From the IMG/VR virus record IMGVR_UViG_3300036770_003943, positions 1 to 64,000 of that record: 64,000 bases of DNA. One strand, given 5' to 3'. Position 1 is the stretch's first letter. The number at the start of each line of letters is the position of its first letter. The notes under the pieces are model-generated. The model worked only from the letters and a program-made list of their open reading frames with translations, was not told where the DNA came from and searched no databases. Positions 56,194-62,123 of this stretch are shown here, in pieces. Both the position numbers and the translations under genes were made by a program.

Positions 56194-57390
56194 CTACTTA
56201 TAAACTTTGACTAAGACTGTTTCAGACCCAATACGTCCATTTAGTTTAATTTCGGTACTCTTAATACCTTTAAACCATTTTTTAGCTGCGGGTTTGCCAG
56301 TATCTGAGAACTCTTTAATTTGCTTGTCAGGCTTGCGTAGAGTTTTTTGGACACTAGTGGCTTCATCAAATCCAAAGATCTTTGACCCTTTTACACTGAG
56401 CTTACCCATATGGCTGTCAGCAATGTAAATACCCAACTTACGAGTCTTTGTATTATATACCCACAGTTCTTCCGCTGTAAGAATGTTAACTGGGTCCACA
56501 CTTTTAAGTTTTAAGTCAGCAAACTCTTTGAGATACTGTAGTTTAGCAACTACTTTTTCCGGCGGCACTGCTTTCTTTTTACGCGGAGCTTTAGCTGCCT
56601 TTTTAATCATGCCATAACTATTACAGTCATTAAGAGCTTGTTGCCACCAAGCAATTACAGCCTTGACTTGCCGCTTGCCCCAATGTTTATATGCTTCTAC
56701 TAACTGTCCTTCTTTGCCTTCGGCAACTAGTTCAAATTCATTAATGTTTCGTTGAACAGTGTTAGCAATGTATTTGACATGAGCAGGTTGAATATTGTGC
56801 CTAGTTAACAAGTCGACTAATTTTGGATCTCCTTTAAAGTCATTTTTGATAAAATCATCAAACGCACCTTCTAGGTCTCCCATACAGCCTTGAGCTTTTT
56901 CACGTAGGCGATCTTGAATGTTGAACTTAGGTACAACTGGCTTGGCCTGTTCGATGGCTACTGGAATTAATTTTGAATCATGTCCAGTCAATTTGAGTGC
57001 TCGGACCACACTACGTAAGGTACCGAACTTTAGCTTAAGTCCTAGTCGGCCAGCACGTAGAATAAAGCCAATAGTGCTTCCGGGACTAAGTTCTCCTTTT
57101 TTGATAGCTTCAACTTGACTGCGTCGACGTGGGTTACGGTTAAGGAATTCTAGCAGCCATTCCTGGCTTTGCTTGCTGTCTTGTGTAAAATTATACCAAT
57201 TTAAAGTGCGAGCAACACGAATACGATACTCACGATGACTCCAAATATCTTGTTCATCTAAACCAGGATGCTGCGGTTCGCTTCCCACATATTTGGCATC
57301 GGCATCTTTATAGACGACAGCTTTAGGCGCAGGCTCAAAACGCCAAGCAATTTTATTTCCGCTTAGTTTTGGTTGTTTTCGAGTTGCCAT
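56194..57390 (-). CDS. Hypothetical protein
   Basis: 398-aa basic ORF with AGGAG RBS. Confidence 0.8.
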   Translation of the reverse strand: MATRKQPKLSGNKIAWRFEPAPKAVVYKDADAKYVGSEPQHPGLDEQDIWSHREYRIRVARTLNWYNFTQDSKQSQEWLLEFLNRNPRRRSQVEAIKKGELSPGSTIGFILRAGRLGLKLKFGTLRSVVRALKLTGHDSKLIPVAIEQAKPVVPKFNIQDRLREKAQGCMGDLEGAFDDFIKNDFKGDPKLVDLLTRHNIQPAHVKYIANTVQRNINEFELVAEGKEGQLVEAYKHWGKRQVKAVIAWWQQALNDCNSYGMIKKAAKAPRKKKAVPPEKVVAKLQYLKEFADLKLKSVDPVNILTAEELWVYNTKTRKLGIYIADSHMGKLSVKGSKIFGFDEATSVQKTLRKPDKQIKEFSDTGKPAAKKWFKGIKSTEIKLNGRIGSETVLVKVYK

Positions 57391-57817
57391 ACTTTCTCCT
57401 AATTAGTTCAAATGCCTTATGCATCAATAATGATTCTTTACTATAGGCTTCAATTTCCCATGGTCTGTCCAAATACTTGTTTTTAGTTAGTTTACCTAAC
57501 CAAAAATAACCATATCGTTTATTATGAGGTTTGATCTTTAATTGTCCAAGAACAAACTGTTTGATATGTACCATTTCATGTGCTAGTATCCTAGCCATTT
57601 TGTCTTGTTTCAATGTACTCTGTAAGAAAATGAAATACTGCCCATCATGTTCGGTAGCAAAGCCATCTGCTTCAAAACTACTCTGAACATCCCGACGAGT
57701 TACTATAGTAACACTTTTTGGATTTTTGTCCAATTTTAATAGCAAGGCATAGGCCTGCGCCAATTCAACGAGTACCTCTCGTTTTAACTTGCTACGACAA
57801 TTAGCTTGAATGTCCAT
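57353..57817 (-). CDS. Zn metallopeptidase (HExxH, SprT/ImmA-like)
   Basis: LAHEMVHIKQ and PWEIEAY. Confidence 0.8.
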   Translation of the reverse strand: MDIQANCRSKLKREVLVELAQAYALLLKLDKNPKSVTIVTRRDVQSSFEADGFATEHDGQYFIFLQSTLKQDKMARILAHEMVHIKQFVLGQLKIKPHNKRYGYFWLGKLTKNKYLDRPWEIEAYSKESLLMHKAFELIRRKYGNSKTTKTKRK

Positions 57818-57853
57818 TTTCACAGTATAGCAAATTAGTCATTTTATGTCAAT

Positions 57854-57892: not shown

Positions 57893-58912
57893 TTAGAAAC
57901 GATGACGCACTCCAACGCCCATTACACGAGTATCTGCCCATGCTGCGTTAGTACGATTAACTCCATCATTTGTGTAGTCAGTGTCACGCAGAGCTGCGTA
58001 GATGTCTGTACGCTTGCTCATAGCATGACTTACTCCCAGTGCCCAACTAGCTGTTTCAGCACTGCGGCTACCTACAAAATTGTGGTCGAAGTGGCTGTAA
58101 CTAGCCATAATGGTATTGCCTTTGCCCATCGGCAAACTAGCACCAATGCTGTAACCTTTATCTTCTTTGGTTACTAGATCACTGTTTTCTACACGATTCC
58201 ATTGTGCGAATAGTTTGGCTTTTTTCAAGTCAATGCTGACGCCACTGATGAACGATGTCATATTATGACGTCCTGGTCCAGCATCAATTTCTTGCCATGT
58301 AGCGGTAAAACCAACTGGGCCTTGAAACATCATTGCTCCAACACTTTTACCACCTTGTTTACTGCCAAACGCATCGTCTTGTACACCAGCTGAATATACA
58401 CCAGTTAGTGCCAATGGACCAGCATTAGTTTTAACTAAAACAGAATTGTTCCAGCCTGTGTCGCTGCCACCGCCTGCTAGATTATAGTTGTTTACACCAA
58501 AACGCTGTGTAACCATGGGAGAAAATACAAAACTATCGCCTAACGCATTAAACGCAATAGTTGAAATAAAGTAAGGAGTGGTTACACGACCTACTTGTAG
58601 TTCAGCCGCCTTGTTGCTTAATCCAACATAGGCATTGCGAGCAAACATTACATCGCCATTAAAACGTCCTTGTTGAGCAGTGTCTGGGCGTAAAAATTGT
58701 TCTAATACAACATTAGCCTTTACTCCGCCACTTAGGTCTTCCGAACTACGAATACCAATGTAACTGGTTGTCATACCGCCGGCGTTAACCTGTGCAGGCG
58801 ATTTACCGTCAGTCTTACCAACATAACCGTCGACTAGACCATATATACTGGTTTGAGCTTGTGCTAATGAAGCAGCTCCAGCAAGTAATGCTGCCAATAA
58901 AAGTTTTTTCAT
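57893..58912 (-). CDS. Gram-negative general porin (betaproteobacterial type)
   Basis: Signal peptide, SIYG.VD.Y, S..G.R.SEDL.GG, R.A.VGL, Y..SKRT..Y, GVRHRF terminal Phe. Confidence 0.93.
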   Translation of the reverse strand: MKKLLLAALLAGAASLAQAQTSIYGLVDGYVGKTDGKSPAQVNAGGMTTSYIGIRSSEDLSGGVKANVVLEQFLRPDTAQQGRFNGDVMFARNAYVGLSNKAAELQVGRVTTPYFISTIAFNALGDSFVFSPMVTQRFGVNNYNLAGGGSDTGWNNSVLVKTNAGPLALTGVYSAGVQDDAFGSKQGGKSVGAMMFQGPVGFTATWQEIDAGPGRHNMTSFISGVSIDLKKAKLFAQWNRVENSDLVTKEDKGYSIGASLPMGKGNTIMASYSHFDHNFVGSRSAETASWALGVSHAMSKRTDIYAALRDTDYTNDGVNRTNAAWADTRVMGVGVRHRF

Positions 58913-59106
58913 TCTTGTTTCCTTTTTAAAATCATATACACTAATATATAGTTGCTTTTACCTATTAATGTACATGTAGTCATTATTTAAATCATCTCTT
59001 ACGGTAGGATAAAACAAACTATAACTATTATCGTTGTAGATTAGCAACAATAATATACCTACTTAAATTGAAAAGATAAAAATCAATAGCAGGTAAATAC
59101 TATACT

Positions 59107-60153
59107 ATGCCTAGACTAAGCCTTTGGAAAACAGAAAAAACATCTGACTATCACTTTATGGATAAAGTGATTCGCGAACAATTTTTGGTTGGTGGTACTG
59201 GAGTTTTGGTACACAAATATCTTAAGCCGGCGGATCAAGGAGCCAGTAATGATGCTACCAGACCTAACTATAATGTTGAAAGTGAACTAAACGAAACTAA
59301 AATACAAGATCTATTATTTCTCGAAAATAGAGATAGAATTTATGATCCTGACATTTATGAACTACGTGGAGTATATAATGTAGGGGATCAAGACTTTGAC
59401 TTAACGCAGTTTGGGTTATTTCTTAGTGCTGATACTATTTTTATTACGTTTCACACCAATGATATGGTAGAACGAATGGGACGTAAGCTCATGGCTGGAG
59501 ATGTATTAGAATTACCGCATGTTAGAGACGACTTACTGTTAGATCAAACTAAACCAGCAATTAATAAATTCTATGTGGTACAAGATGCCAGTCGTGCTGC
59601 CGAGGGGTTTAGCCAAACTTGGTATCCTCATATATGGCGTGTCAAAGCTAGCCCGATGACTGATGCTCAAGAATATCGAGACATTCTTCAGAAAGTATCT
59701 GAAAACAATGTAGATACTTTAAAAGATGCCCTAAGCACATATCAGCGTGAATTAGAAATAAGCAATGCTATAGTTGAACGAGGTCAACAATTAGCTCCAA
59801 CTATTTTAGACAATGATAATAACCTATTAACCGATGCTACTAAAGGCTATCAGAAAAATGCCGACGATGTATATGATCACGGAGAAACTTTGGCTTCGGG
59901 ATTAAGTTTTCCAATTAACCCGCAGCAAGGCGATTTCTTTCAACGTACAGATTACAGCCCGCCAGTATTGTTTGTATATCGTGGTACAAGATGGCAAAGA
60001 ATGTCTGTACAAAATGGTGCTGTAGATGTTAAAGATAAAAACTTAAACGCAGCCCCGTTCATTAACAATGATGCTACCACTGTGGTAGGAAATGAAGAAG
60101 TTCCAGAGCGTCAAGCTCTAAGCCAAGTTATCAAACCCAAAACGGATTTCTAA
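59107..60153 (+). CDS. gp14: Neck protein gp14-like (head-tail connector)
   Basis: MPRLSLW..., FLENRDR.YD, DL.QFGL, GRKLM.GDVLELPH. Confidence 0.7.
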   Translation: MPRLSLWKTEKTSDYHFMDKVIREQFLVGGTGVLVHKYLKPADQGASNDATRPNYNVESELNETKIQDLLFLENRDRIYDPDIYELRGVYNVGDQDFDLTQFGLFLSADTIFITFHTNDMVERMGRKLMAGDVLELPHVRDDLLLDQTKPAINKFYVVQDASRAAEGFSQTWYPHIWRVKASPMTDAQEYRDILQKVSENNVDTLKDALSTYQRELEISNAIVERGQQLAPTILDNDNNLLTDATKGYQKNADDVYDHGETLASGLSFPINPQQGDFFQRTDYSPPVLFVYRGTRWQRMSVQNGAVDVKDKNLNAAPFINNDATTVVGNEEVPERQALSQVIKPKTDF

Positions 60154-60155
60154 CT

Positions 60156-60293
60156 ATGCACATTTATAGAATAAAAAATTTAGTTAATGGCAAGATATAT
60201 ATAGGCCAAACTGTACAAAAAAATCCTAAGATGAGATGGTGCGCCCATATCAATAATGCTAGAAAAGGAGGCGACAGTTTAACGCTGTTGTAA
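60156..60293 (+). pseudogene. Truncated GIY-YIG homing endonuclease (45 codons)
   Basis: MHIYRIKNLVNGKIYIGQT.....MRW..H; stops before the catalytic Glu. Confidence 0.8.
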
Positions 60294-60297
60294 GACT

Positions 60298-61650
60298 ATC
60301 AATTTTTTTTACGATGAACAAATAAGAAGATACCTAACGCAGTTCATGCGTATATTGGGTGGCTTTAGTGTCAAAACTGGTAAGGACAGAAATGGCAATG
60401 AGACCTACATACAAGTACCAGTAAGATATGGTGATATCAACCGTATGGCTGCTCACATCCTTAAGAATCAAAGTGAGAACATGATCAACACTGTGCCTTT
60501 TATCAGTTGTTATGTGACTGATTTACAGATTAGTGCTGAACGTAGAATGAATCCAACTCATACTGATAAGGTCAGAGTTTATGAAAAGAAATTCGATACG
60601 ACCACCGGAGAGTATATAGATAGTGAAGTAGGTAATACTTATACTATCGAAAGATATATGCCAGTGCCCTACGACCTTACAGTACAAGTAGATATATGGA
60701 CTAGTAATACAGATCAAAAATTACAAATATTAGAACAATTACTAGTGTTGTTTAACCCTAGTATTAACTTAAAAACTAACGACAATCCTTTTGATTGGAG
60801 TAATTTAACTTATACAGAATTAGTCAACGTAGTATGGAGTGTAAGACAAGTTCCGTCAGGGACTGATGATATCATTGACGTAGCAGCGTTAAACTTTACA
60901 TTGCCTATATTAATAAACCCCCCAGCAAAAGTAAAACGTCAAACTCTAATACATACCATACTGACTGAAATACGCAGATTGCGAGATGATCAAGAACTTG
61001 ACTGGGTGCCATCAAACCCTACTCCAAACAAAGAATGGGTCGTTGTTACTTTTGAAAACTTTAAACTACAGGTACGAATAGAAGGGGATCACGCACTCTT
61101 ACTTAATAGTTCTGGTGGAAATACCGATGCCAATGGTGATGTTTTAAGTTGGGAAGAAGTTCTTAAACCATTCGGCGAATTAAGATTGGGCATTAGTAAT
61201 TTGAGACTGCGTAGAGGAGCAGATCCTAGCGATTTCAGCGAAGATATTATCGCAACGTTCACAGGTTTAGATCCAACTGTTTTAAACAAGGCTTATATAT
61301 CCTTGGATACTGATAGTTTACCCAGTGCTACTGTGCCTGCAGTAAATGCTATTATTAACCCTACTAAGTCTGCCCCAGGATCTGGGTTACCGACAGCAGT
61401 AACTAACCAACGGTATCTTGTTCTTCAAGCAGTACCACAAAGTACATTTTGGGGAGTAAACACCGCGAAAGCCAATGACATAATTCAATATAACGGCAGT
61501 TCATGGATAGTTAGCTTTGATAGTTCAAGCAATTCTAGTGCCGTTGTCTTAAATACTGCTACAGGATATCTTTACGAATGGCGCAATCAACAATGGATCA
61601 GCGCAGTTGAAGGTACATATCAAAACGGTTATTGGAGATTGTATTTGTGA
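60298..61650 (+). CDS. gp15: Tail terminator/sheath stabiliser gp15-like; start codon uncertain (ATC 60298 or ATG 60346)
   Basis: FFYDEQIRRYL.QF.R, VP..YG, P.I, MPVPY.L...VDIW.SN.DQK.Q..EQ...LFNP. Confidence 0.85.
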   Translation: MNFFYDEQIRRYLTQFMRILGGFSVKTGKDRNGNETYIQVPVRYGDINRMAAHILKNQSENMINTVPFISCYVTDLQISAERRMNPTHTDKVRVYEKKFDTTTGEYIDSEVGNTYTIERYMPVPYDLTVQVDIWTSNTDQKLQILEQLLVLFNPSINLKTNDNPFDWSNLTYTELVNVVWSVRQVPSGTDDIIDVAALNFTLPILINPPAKVKRQTLIHTILTEIRRLRDDQELDWVPSNPTPNKEWVVVTFENFKLQVRIEGDHALLLNSSGGNTDANGDVLSWEEVLKPFGELRLGISNLRLRRGADPSDFSEDIIATFTGLDPTVLNKAYISLDTDSLPSATVPAVNAIINPTKSAPGSGLPTAVTNQRYLVLQAVPQSTFWGVNTAKANDIIQYNGSSWIVSFDSSSNSSAVVLNTATGYLYEWRNQQWISAVEGTYQNGYWRLYL

Positions 61651-62123
61651 AGCAGTTTAAAGGAGTTGGTGGTATAATAGTTAGTGAAAAAACAGGCAAA
61701 GTTCTAACAGTGTTACGTAGCAGCAAAGAAACCCATCCTAATACTTGGACTTTTGCGGGTGGTAAAGTAGATGCCAATGAAACAGCCAGCCAAGCTCTAA
61801 TCAGAGAACTAGAAGAAGAATTACAACTTATCAAAGTTAAAAAAATTATTCCCTTACATAGGTATCAAAGTAGAAGCAAAGATTTCATCTACGATACTTT
61901 TATTGTGTTAGTAAAACAAGAATTTATTCCTGAATTAAACTGGGAAAATAGTGGTTATGCTTGGACATATATAAATACTTTACCAACACCATTACACCCT
62001 AAGACAAGACAAATGATTACATCTAGCAGAATTATCAATAAGTTTAATAATTTTTATACTTGGGTAGACAAGAAGAATGGCAGCGACGATAATACCATTT
62101 CCGAAGAGCGAGTCGGCACTTAA
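61647..62123 (+). CDS. NUDIX hydrolase
   Basis: W..AGGKVD.NET..QA..RELEEE Nudix box; GTGA overlap with the gp15 stop. Confidence 0.9.
   Translation: MKQFKGVGGIIVSEKTGKVLTVLRSSKETHPNTWTFAGGKVDANETASQALIRELEEELQLIKVKKIIPLHRYQSRSKDFIYDTFIVLVKQEFIPELNWENSGYAWTYINTLPTPLHPKTRQMITSSRIINKFNNFYTWVDKKNGSDDNTISEERVGT

Follow-up and report, generated by a model that had tools for sequence, protein, structure and literature searches.

Gene order at the gp14-gp15 junction

The analyzed window comprises the first 64,000 nucleotides of a 231,776-b IMG/VR virus record (IMGVR_UViG_3300036770_003943), which represents an uncultured jumbo myophage. Its gp15 is about 37% identical to those of PA5oct, Atu_ph07 and SCTP-2, whereas a DNA similarity search with positions 59900-60700 against GenBank phages yielded no matches. 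The gene in the position of T4 gene 14 (59107-60153, + strand, 348 aa) ends with TAA at 60151-3. It has no Pfam hit but matches PHROG 11591 'virion structural protein' (E=1.7e-91), and its PA5oct homologue is a virion protein confirmed by mass spectrometry. The name gp14 is given by position only. Upstream, on the minus strand, lie a weak SprT-like/DUF6782 metallopeptidase-like gene (57353-57823) and a gene for a 339-aa protein with a signal-peptide-like N-terminus (57893-58912), which matches Pfam Porin_4 (E=6e-37). The latter gene is found beside the virion gene in two related contigs, L038 and L064 (L numbers denote the loci compared here). It looks like a phage-borne Gram-negative porin conserved in this clade and hints at a proteobacterial host. 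Downstream, gp15, the tail sheath stabiliser or tail terminator gene, extends to 61650 and is directly followed by a NUDIX hydrolase gene (61632-62123, + strand), as in PA5oct.

Between the two virion genes, ATG 60156 opens a 45-codon ORF (60156-60293, + strand) which ends with TAA at 60291-3 and matches the Pfam GIY-YIG domain (E=3.2e-7), but only over profile positions 3-38 of 78. The gp15 frame is closed by TAA 60280-2 and continues with CGC TGT TGT AAG ACT, followed by ATC at 60298-60300 and then AAT TTT TTT TAC. The first in-frame ATG is at 60346-60348, in codon 17 counted from ATC, and there is no ATG, GTG or TTG between the closing stop and this codon. Counted from ATC 60298, gp15 has 450 codons (60298-61650, + strand) and begins with N-F-F-Y-D-E-Q after the first codon. 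The Pfam profile T4-gp15_tss (PF16724, E=2.8e-27, 95.9 bits against a cut-off of 25) matches residues 4-230, with residue 4 corresponding to profile position 2, and the solved T4 gp15 chains 4HUH/3J2M (E=8e-5) align from residue 2. PHROG 227 is matched at E=6e-25. A Shine-Dalgarno (SD) sequence, AGGAGG, is located at 60266-60271, 26-27 nt before ATC in the linear sequence. It is followed by a predicted hairpin (60271-60291) of 8 bp, three of them G.U, in which 60271-78 pairs with 60284-91 around a 5-nt loop (60279-83) holding TAA 60280. The hairpin leaves a spacer of 6 nt (60292-60297) before ATC. Locally, the fold has -9.5 kcal/mol (z=-2.4, with 6 of 200 shuffles as stable), although in a 91-nt context it is not significant (z=+0.85).

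The sequence of this junction is supported by independent assemblies. A 17.7-kb Logan contig of the probable source run matches positions 59000-62000 with 0 differences. A 659-nt contig from an aquaculture metagenome of another study covers 59884-60542, including the remnant ORF, ATC 60298 and the run of eight T residues, with 0 differences and 0 gaps. A freshwater run from a third study covers 60105-60255 and 60300-60475 with 0 differences. Since these are contigs, rare variants would not show, but an assembly error is very unlikely.

ATC 60298 occupies the ancestral start position of gp15

In PA5oct, gp15 is a virion protein detected by mass spectrometry, which is annotated to begin with M-N-Y-F-Y-D-E-Q, and its ATG overlaps the upstream stop. 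In about 110 distinct relatives without the insert, a canonical start is found at exactly the codon of ATC 60298 or 1-4 codons upstream. It is almost always ATG, overlaps or lies within a few nt of the upstream stop and mostly has no SD, which is the signature of translational coupling. The nearest relatives read ATG AAT TTC (M-N-F-F-Y) at this position, and codons 2-16 of the window gp15 show only synonymous differences from them. The first 16 residues are the best-conserved block of the family back to T4 gp15. Gene callers nonetheless choose ATG 60346, and they often pick the corresponding inner ATG even in relatives in which the upstream ATG is present (for example, L037-L040 and L019), so that many database entries of 434 aa are 16 residues short. 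No SD precedes ATG 60346, which is probably an internal Met codon.

The insert derives from a GIY-YIG homing endonuclease gene

A profile search of IMG/VR recovered three more contigs with ATC at the gp15 start (L064, L077, L078), in which the upstream 33 nt align without gaps to window positions 60265-97. A pattern for ATC-AAY followed by the N-terminus added L126, L127 and L128, whereas a strict pattern for the SD-hairpin module found only the three contigs already known. In L127, three consecutive in-frame ATC codons (283-291) precede AAT. When ATT, ATC or ATA (AUH) was allowed at the start, 77 stretches were found, which reduce to 41 distinct contexts. In all 79 matches, the frame is closed upstream and holds no canonical start. 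Given that this pattern demanded ATH and the N-terminal residues, the set cannot measure frequency or N-terminal conservation. Indeed, an apparent all-AUH clade in a 108-row tree proved to be a sampling artefact: an unbiased sample of that clade contained 29 ATG, 1 TTG, 4 AUH and 2 odd cases among 36 contexts, that is, about 11% AUH.

Seven contigs (L128, L129, L131, L140, L161, L162 and L197) carry an intact 169-182-aa GIY-YIG homing endonuclease gene (HEG) at this site, and the L131 copy matches PHROG homing endonuclease families at E=1e-27. The HEG ATG overlaps or directly follows the upstream stop, whereas the last codons (K/L/M-E-A-S/A-V-stop) contain GGAGGC. The HEG stop lies in the loop of a short hairpin, and gp15 begins 15-16 nt after that stop with ATT, ATC or ATA. 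In L128 (IMGVR_UViG_3300011268_000834), which has the 182-aa HEG, both the upstream virion gene and gp15 are interrupted by frame changes, reflecting either a poor assembly or a decaying genome. Searches of IMG/VR and JGI contigs with back-translated patterns of the HEG N-terminus gave no hits, as the HEG lineage of the window is too diverged, and intact copies were reached only through gp15.

Comparison with the intact copies shows that the window carries a deletion derivative of a ~175-aa HEG. Codons 1-37 of the remnant ORF are 39-48% identical to the intact HEGs over these residues, and its ATG sits 2 nt after the upstream stop, where relatives have the gp15 ATG. Read in the gp15 frame, positions 60259-82 spell L-E-K-E-A-T-V-stop, equivalent to the C-terminus of the intact HEGs (K-E-A-[SA]-V-stop). 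Thus, TAA 60280 is the HEG's own stop, and the 45-codon ORF is an out-of-frame fusion of HEG codons 1-37 to the last six HEG codons (60262-60282). The deletion junction is inferred to lie at about 60262-60268, within the A-rich AAAAGG run. The TAA at 60291-3 is derived, with A at 60292 where all 31 aligned relatives have T. Without this change, which may be compensatory, the ORF would run across the start to TGA 60314-6. The last HEG codons also form an 8-codon ORF in the gp15 frame (60256-60282, + strand; M-L-E-K-E-A-T-V-stop), resembling the M-E-A-S-V-stop mini-ORFs that overlap the upstream stop in L164, L141 and L188.

Other lineages keep in-frame mini-ORFs of 11-15 codons, only M-E-A-S-V-stop, or the bare module directly after the upstream stop (L150, L180). 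Independent deletions of different extent all keep the 3' module. The insert is always located between the same two genes, but its presence is patchy, as expected of a homing element. In the gp15 tree, the ATC-type sequences fall in three separate places among ATG-type kin, which forces at least 3 changes, and L064 is nested with the insert-free L056 and L098. Sliding identity revealed no clear co-conversion tract. No cultured phage in GenBank has the cassette, and no description of it was found in a literature search, although the latter did not cover all journals.

SD-led initiation at AUC as the favored mechanism

Several lines of comparative evidence point to SD-led initiation at the AUH codon, with the hairpin as a bridge. 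First, the SD and the start type go together. All 41 AUH contexts carry a GGAG-type SD, whereas 81 of 87 canonical-start contexts have no SD-like tetramer and the remaining six have it inside codons of the upstream gene. GGAGG is nearly invariant in 32 module sequences. It should be noted that AGGAG occurs at chance frequency genome-wide and that K-G/K-E codons favor it. Second, the distance from the SD to the start is bimodal. It is 7-8 nt in nine contexts without a hairpin (for example, L126 has the stop, GGAG, 7 nt and ATC) and 25-27 nt in 32 contexts with a hairpin, which then leaves 6-9 nt, with nothing in between. The genome's own genes have GGAG 6-7 nt before ATG. Third, the stem covaries. 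Among 29 distinct sequences, 6 of 8 pairs show changes on both sides, 77% of cells are paired against 30-72% when the partners are slid, and the covariation score of 0.224 (against 0.134+-0.012) is reached by 0 of 500 shuffles. However, covariation counts sequences rather than independent events, two inner pairs are unpaired in the commonest hairpin variant, which is weak (-3.5 to -6 kcal/mol), and the fold of L064 is no better than shuffles. Finally, the first canonical start downstream varies from codon 13 to codon 40 in the AUH lineages, indicating that no internal start is general.

We propose, with moderate confidence, that a free-standing GIY-YIG HEG once sat between the upstream virion gene and gp15 and replaced the ancestral coupled arrangement with its own. 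The HEG AUG takes the coupled position, the last codons (K-E-A) spell a strong SD, and gp15 begins with AUH behind the hairpin. In the window, the HEG has decayed but the 3' module is intact. A 30S subunit would bind AGGAGG, the hairpin would fold away the intervening 21 nt, and initiator tRNA would start gp15 at AUC 60298 at the spacing preferred by the genome, giving full-length gp15 with an N-terminal Met at a reduced rate. That AUC is decoded as the start, and that the hairpin rather than nearby termination delivers the ribosome, are inferences from sequence comparison: no RNA run holds the locus, and the host, and therefore its start-codon stringency, is unknown. Nevertheless, there are precedents. 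AUC supports initiation with an N-terminal Met at 1-3% of AUG in E. coli (bioRxiv 10.1101/063800), and AUA can equal AUG within an optimised initiation region in vitro (PMC5499595). The model does not explain two module-bearing contigs, L220 (about 549) and L273 (about 897), which have TCG at the gp15 start position, with ATC one base out of frame and no canonical or AUH codon in the open frame. L231 has TTG there. AUH starts are not a general habit of this genome. Other combinations of SD and ATH are ATT codons one codon ahead of a canonical start, with one weak exception on the minus strand at 67598 of the record (GGAG, 4 nt, ATC, a 125-codon ORF with the first canonical start 13 codons in). 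No tRNA genes, and thus no phage-borne initiator-like tRNA, were found in the 231.8-kb record.

These results support the sequence-only reading, which had proposed that a GIY-YIG remnant displaces the gp15 start and that AGGAG is bridged by a hairpin to an in-frame ATC, with three refinements. The module is not a by-product of decay but the native 3' end of the intact HEG cassette, TAA 60280 is the HEG's own stop, and the 45-codon ORF is an out-of-frame fusion. The alternatives raised in that reading, a degenerate intron or a sequence error, are not supported.

Alternative explanations

The best surviving alternative, although unlikely as the sole mechanism, is a termination-reinitiation relay, in which ribosomes finishing the upstream gene restart at AUG 60156, translate the 45-codon remnant, stop at UAA 60291-3 and restart 4 nt later at AUC, the SD and hairpin being incidental. 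The relay is attractive for the window because gp15 is normally coupled, the remnant ATG keeps the coupled geometry, and the window-specific T>A at 60292 creates the nearby stop. In most relatives, some ORF ends 1-16 nt before the AUH, and coupling needs very short distances (PMC10666635). By contrast, L150 and L180 have no ORF ending nearer than 31 nt, and about 20 nt abolishes coupling in E. coli. Furthermore, the relay does not explain the conserved GGAGG, the covarying stem or the bimodal spacing. It may still add to the SD route. A 30S left on the SD after termination of the remnant ORF could use the same geometry.

It is improbable that gp15 of this phage starts at ATG 60346 and lacks the first 16 residues, the ATC and upstream codons being untranslated relics. 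This is the first canonical start, gene callers choose it and the leader is A/U-rich, but no SD lies before it, the lost block is the most conserved part of the family, its codons show only synonymous differences from the nearest relatives, and the first canonical start wanders in other AUH lineages. An artefact (ATG>ATC or the length of the T run) or a dead allele carried along by co-infecting wild type could be considered for a metagenome assembly with a homopolymer of 8 T, but is very unlikely, since contigs from a second assembler and from two other studies and habitats are identical where they cover the region, and the same ATC-AAT start with the same module occurs in at least 6 diverged lineages, including contigs above 100 kb. 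Recoding or splicing (a degenerate group I intron, ribosomal bypass from AUG 60156, a frameshift from the remnant ORF, or readthrough of the HEG stop) is equally unlikely: although GIY-YIG genes often live in introns and the mini-ORF of L064/L077-type relatives is in frame with gp15 and separated from it by one TAA, there is no Rfam match at E<=10 in 59800-60700, the 142-nt insert is too short for an intron, inserts are only 31-144 nt in many lineages and those of 31-65 nt keep the same design, the window's remnant ORF and the HEG stop of L127/L128 (16 nt upstream of ATC) are out of frame with gp15, and several lineages have no upstream AUG at all.

Relationship to known systems and implications

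The proposed initiation region is closest to the split ribosome-binding sites of T4 genes 38 and 25 (Nivinskas et al. 1999; Malys & Nivinskas 2009; reviewed in PMC3014915), where a hairpin at an intercistronic junction of late structural genes reduces the spacing from 22 to 5 nt and from 27 to 11 nt, respectively, and the structure is conserved among relatives. Here, however, the start is AUC/AUU/AUA rather than AUG, the SD and the 5' arm lie inside the last codons of a mobile endonuclease gene whose stop is in the loop, and the element is patchy and mobile rather than clade-wide. Expression signals of essential genes are also embedded in T4 seg/mob endonuclease genes, such as the gene 32 promoters inside segG (PMC2988022). 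In those cases, as in this one, a free-standing HEG displaces the native signal of the downstream gene and carries the replacement in its own coding region, which penalises deletions that remove it. The known cases are promoters, whereas here the embedded signal is the translation initiation region, combined with loss of the AUG, and the body of the HEG is repeatedly lost while its last 35 nt or so persist. In E. coli, infC and pcnB likewise have a conserved AUH codon (AUU) preceded by an SD, but here there is no evidence of IF3-type autoregulation, all three AUH codons interchange, and the gene is a phage structural gene whose relatives use AUG. The overlap of the HEG start with the upstream stop (TAATG or TGATG in intact copies) resembles that of mobE after nrdA (UAAUGA; PMC2988022) and suggests coupled, promoter-less expression, although in the present case the HEG has taken over the position of the downstream gene's own start codon.

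A more speculative possibility, which we consider tentative, is that the cassette makes its own 3' end indispensable. On invading the junction, it would swap the coupled AUG of gp15 for a weak AUH that works only behind the SD and hairpin encoded in the last HEG codons, so that phages could lose the enzyme but not its tail end. In this view, AUG is actively selected against behind the strong SD, the third base being T, C or A in 41 of 41 contexts and never G. This would be a translational form of mobile-element 'addiction', spread by homing across phage lineages that share only about 50% gp15 identity. That the start is set by SD-hairpin geometry rather than by the codon, given TCG in L220 and L273, is very unlikely.

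If correct, the proposed mechanism would be a natural, evolutionarily replicated case of AUC/AUU/AUA initiation of an essential phage structural gene, with AUG-type, hairpin-type and hairpin-less relatives as internal controls. It would extend the split-SD mechanism of T4 genes 25 and 38 beyond T-even phages and would show a homing endonuclease rewiring translation, not only transcription, of its neighbor. In practical terms, gene callers truncate gp15 by 16 or more residues, or miss its start, throughout this large family of aquatic phages.
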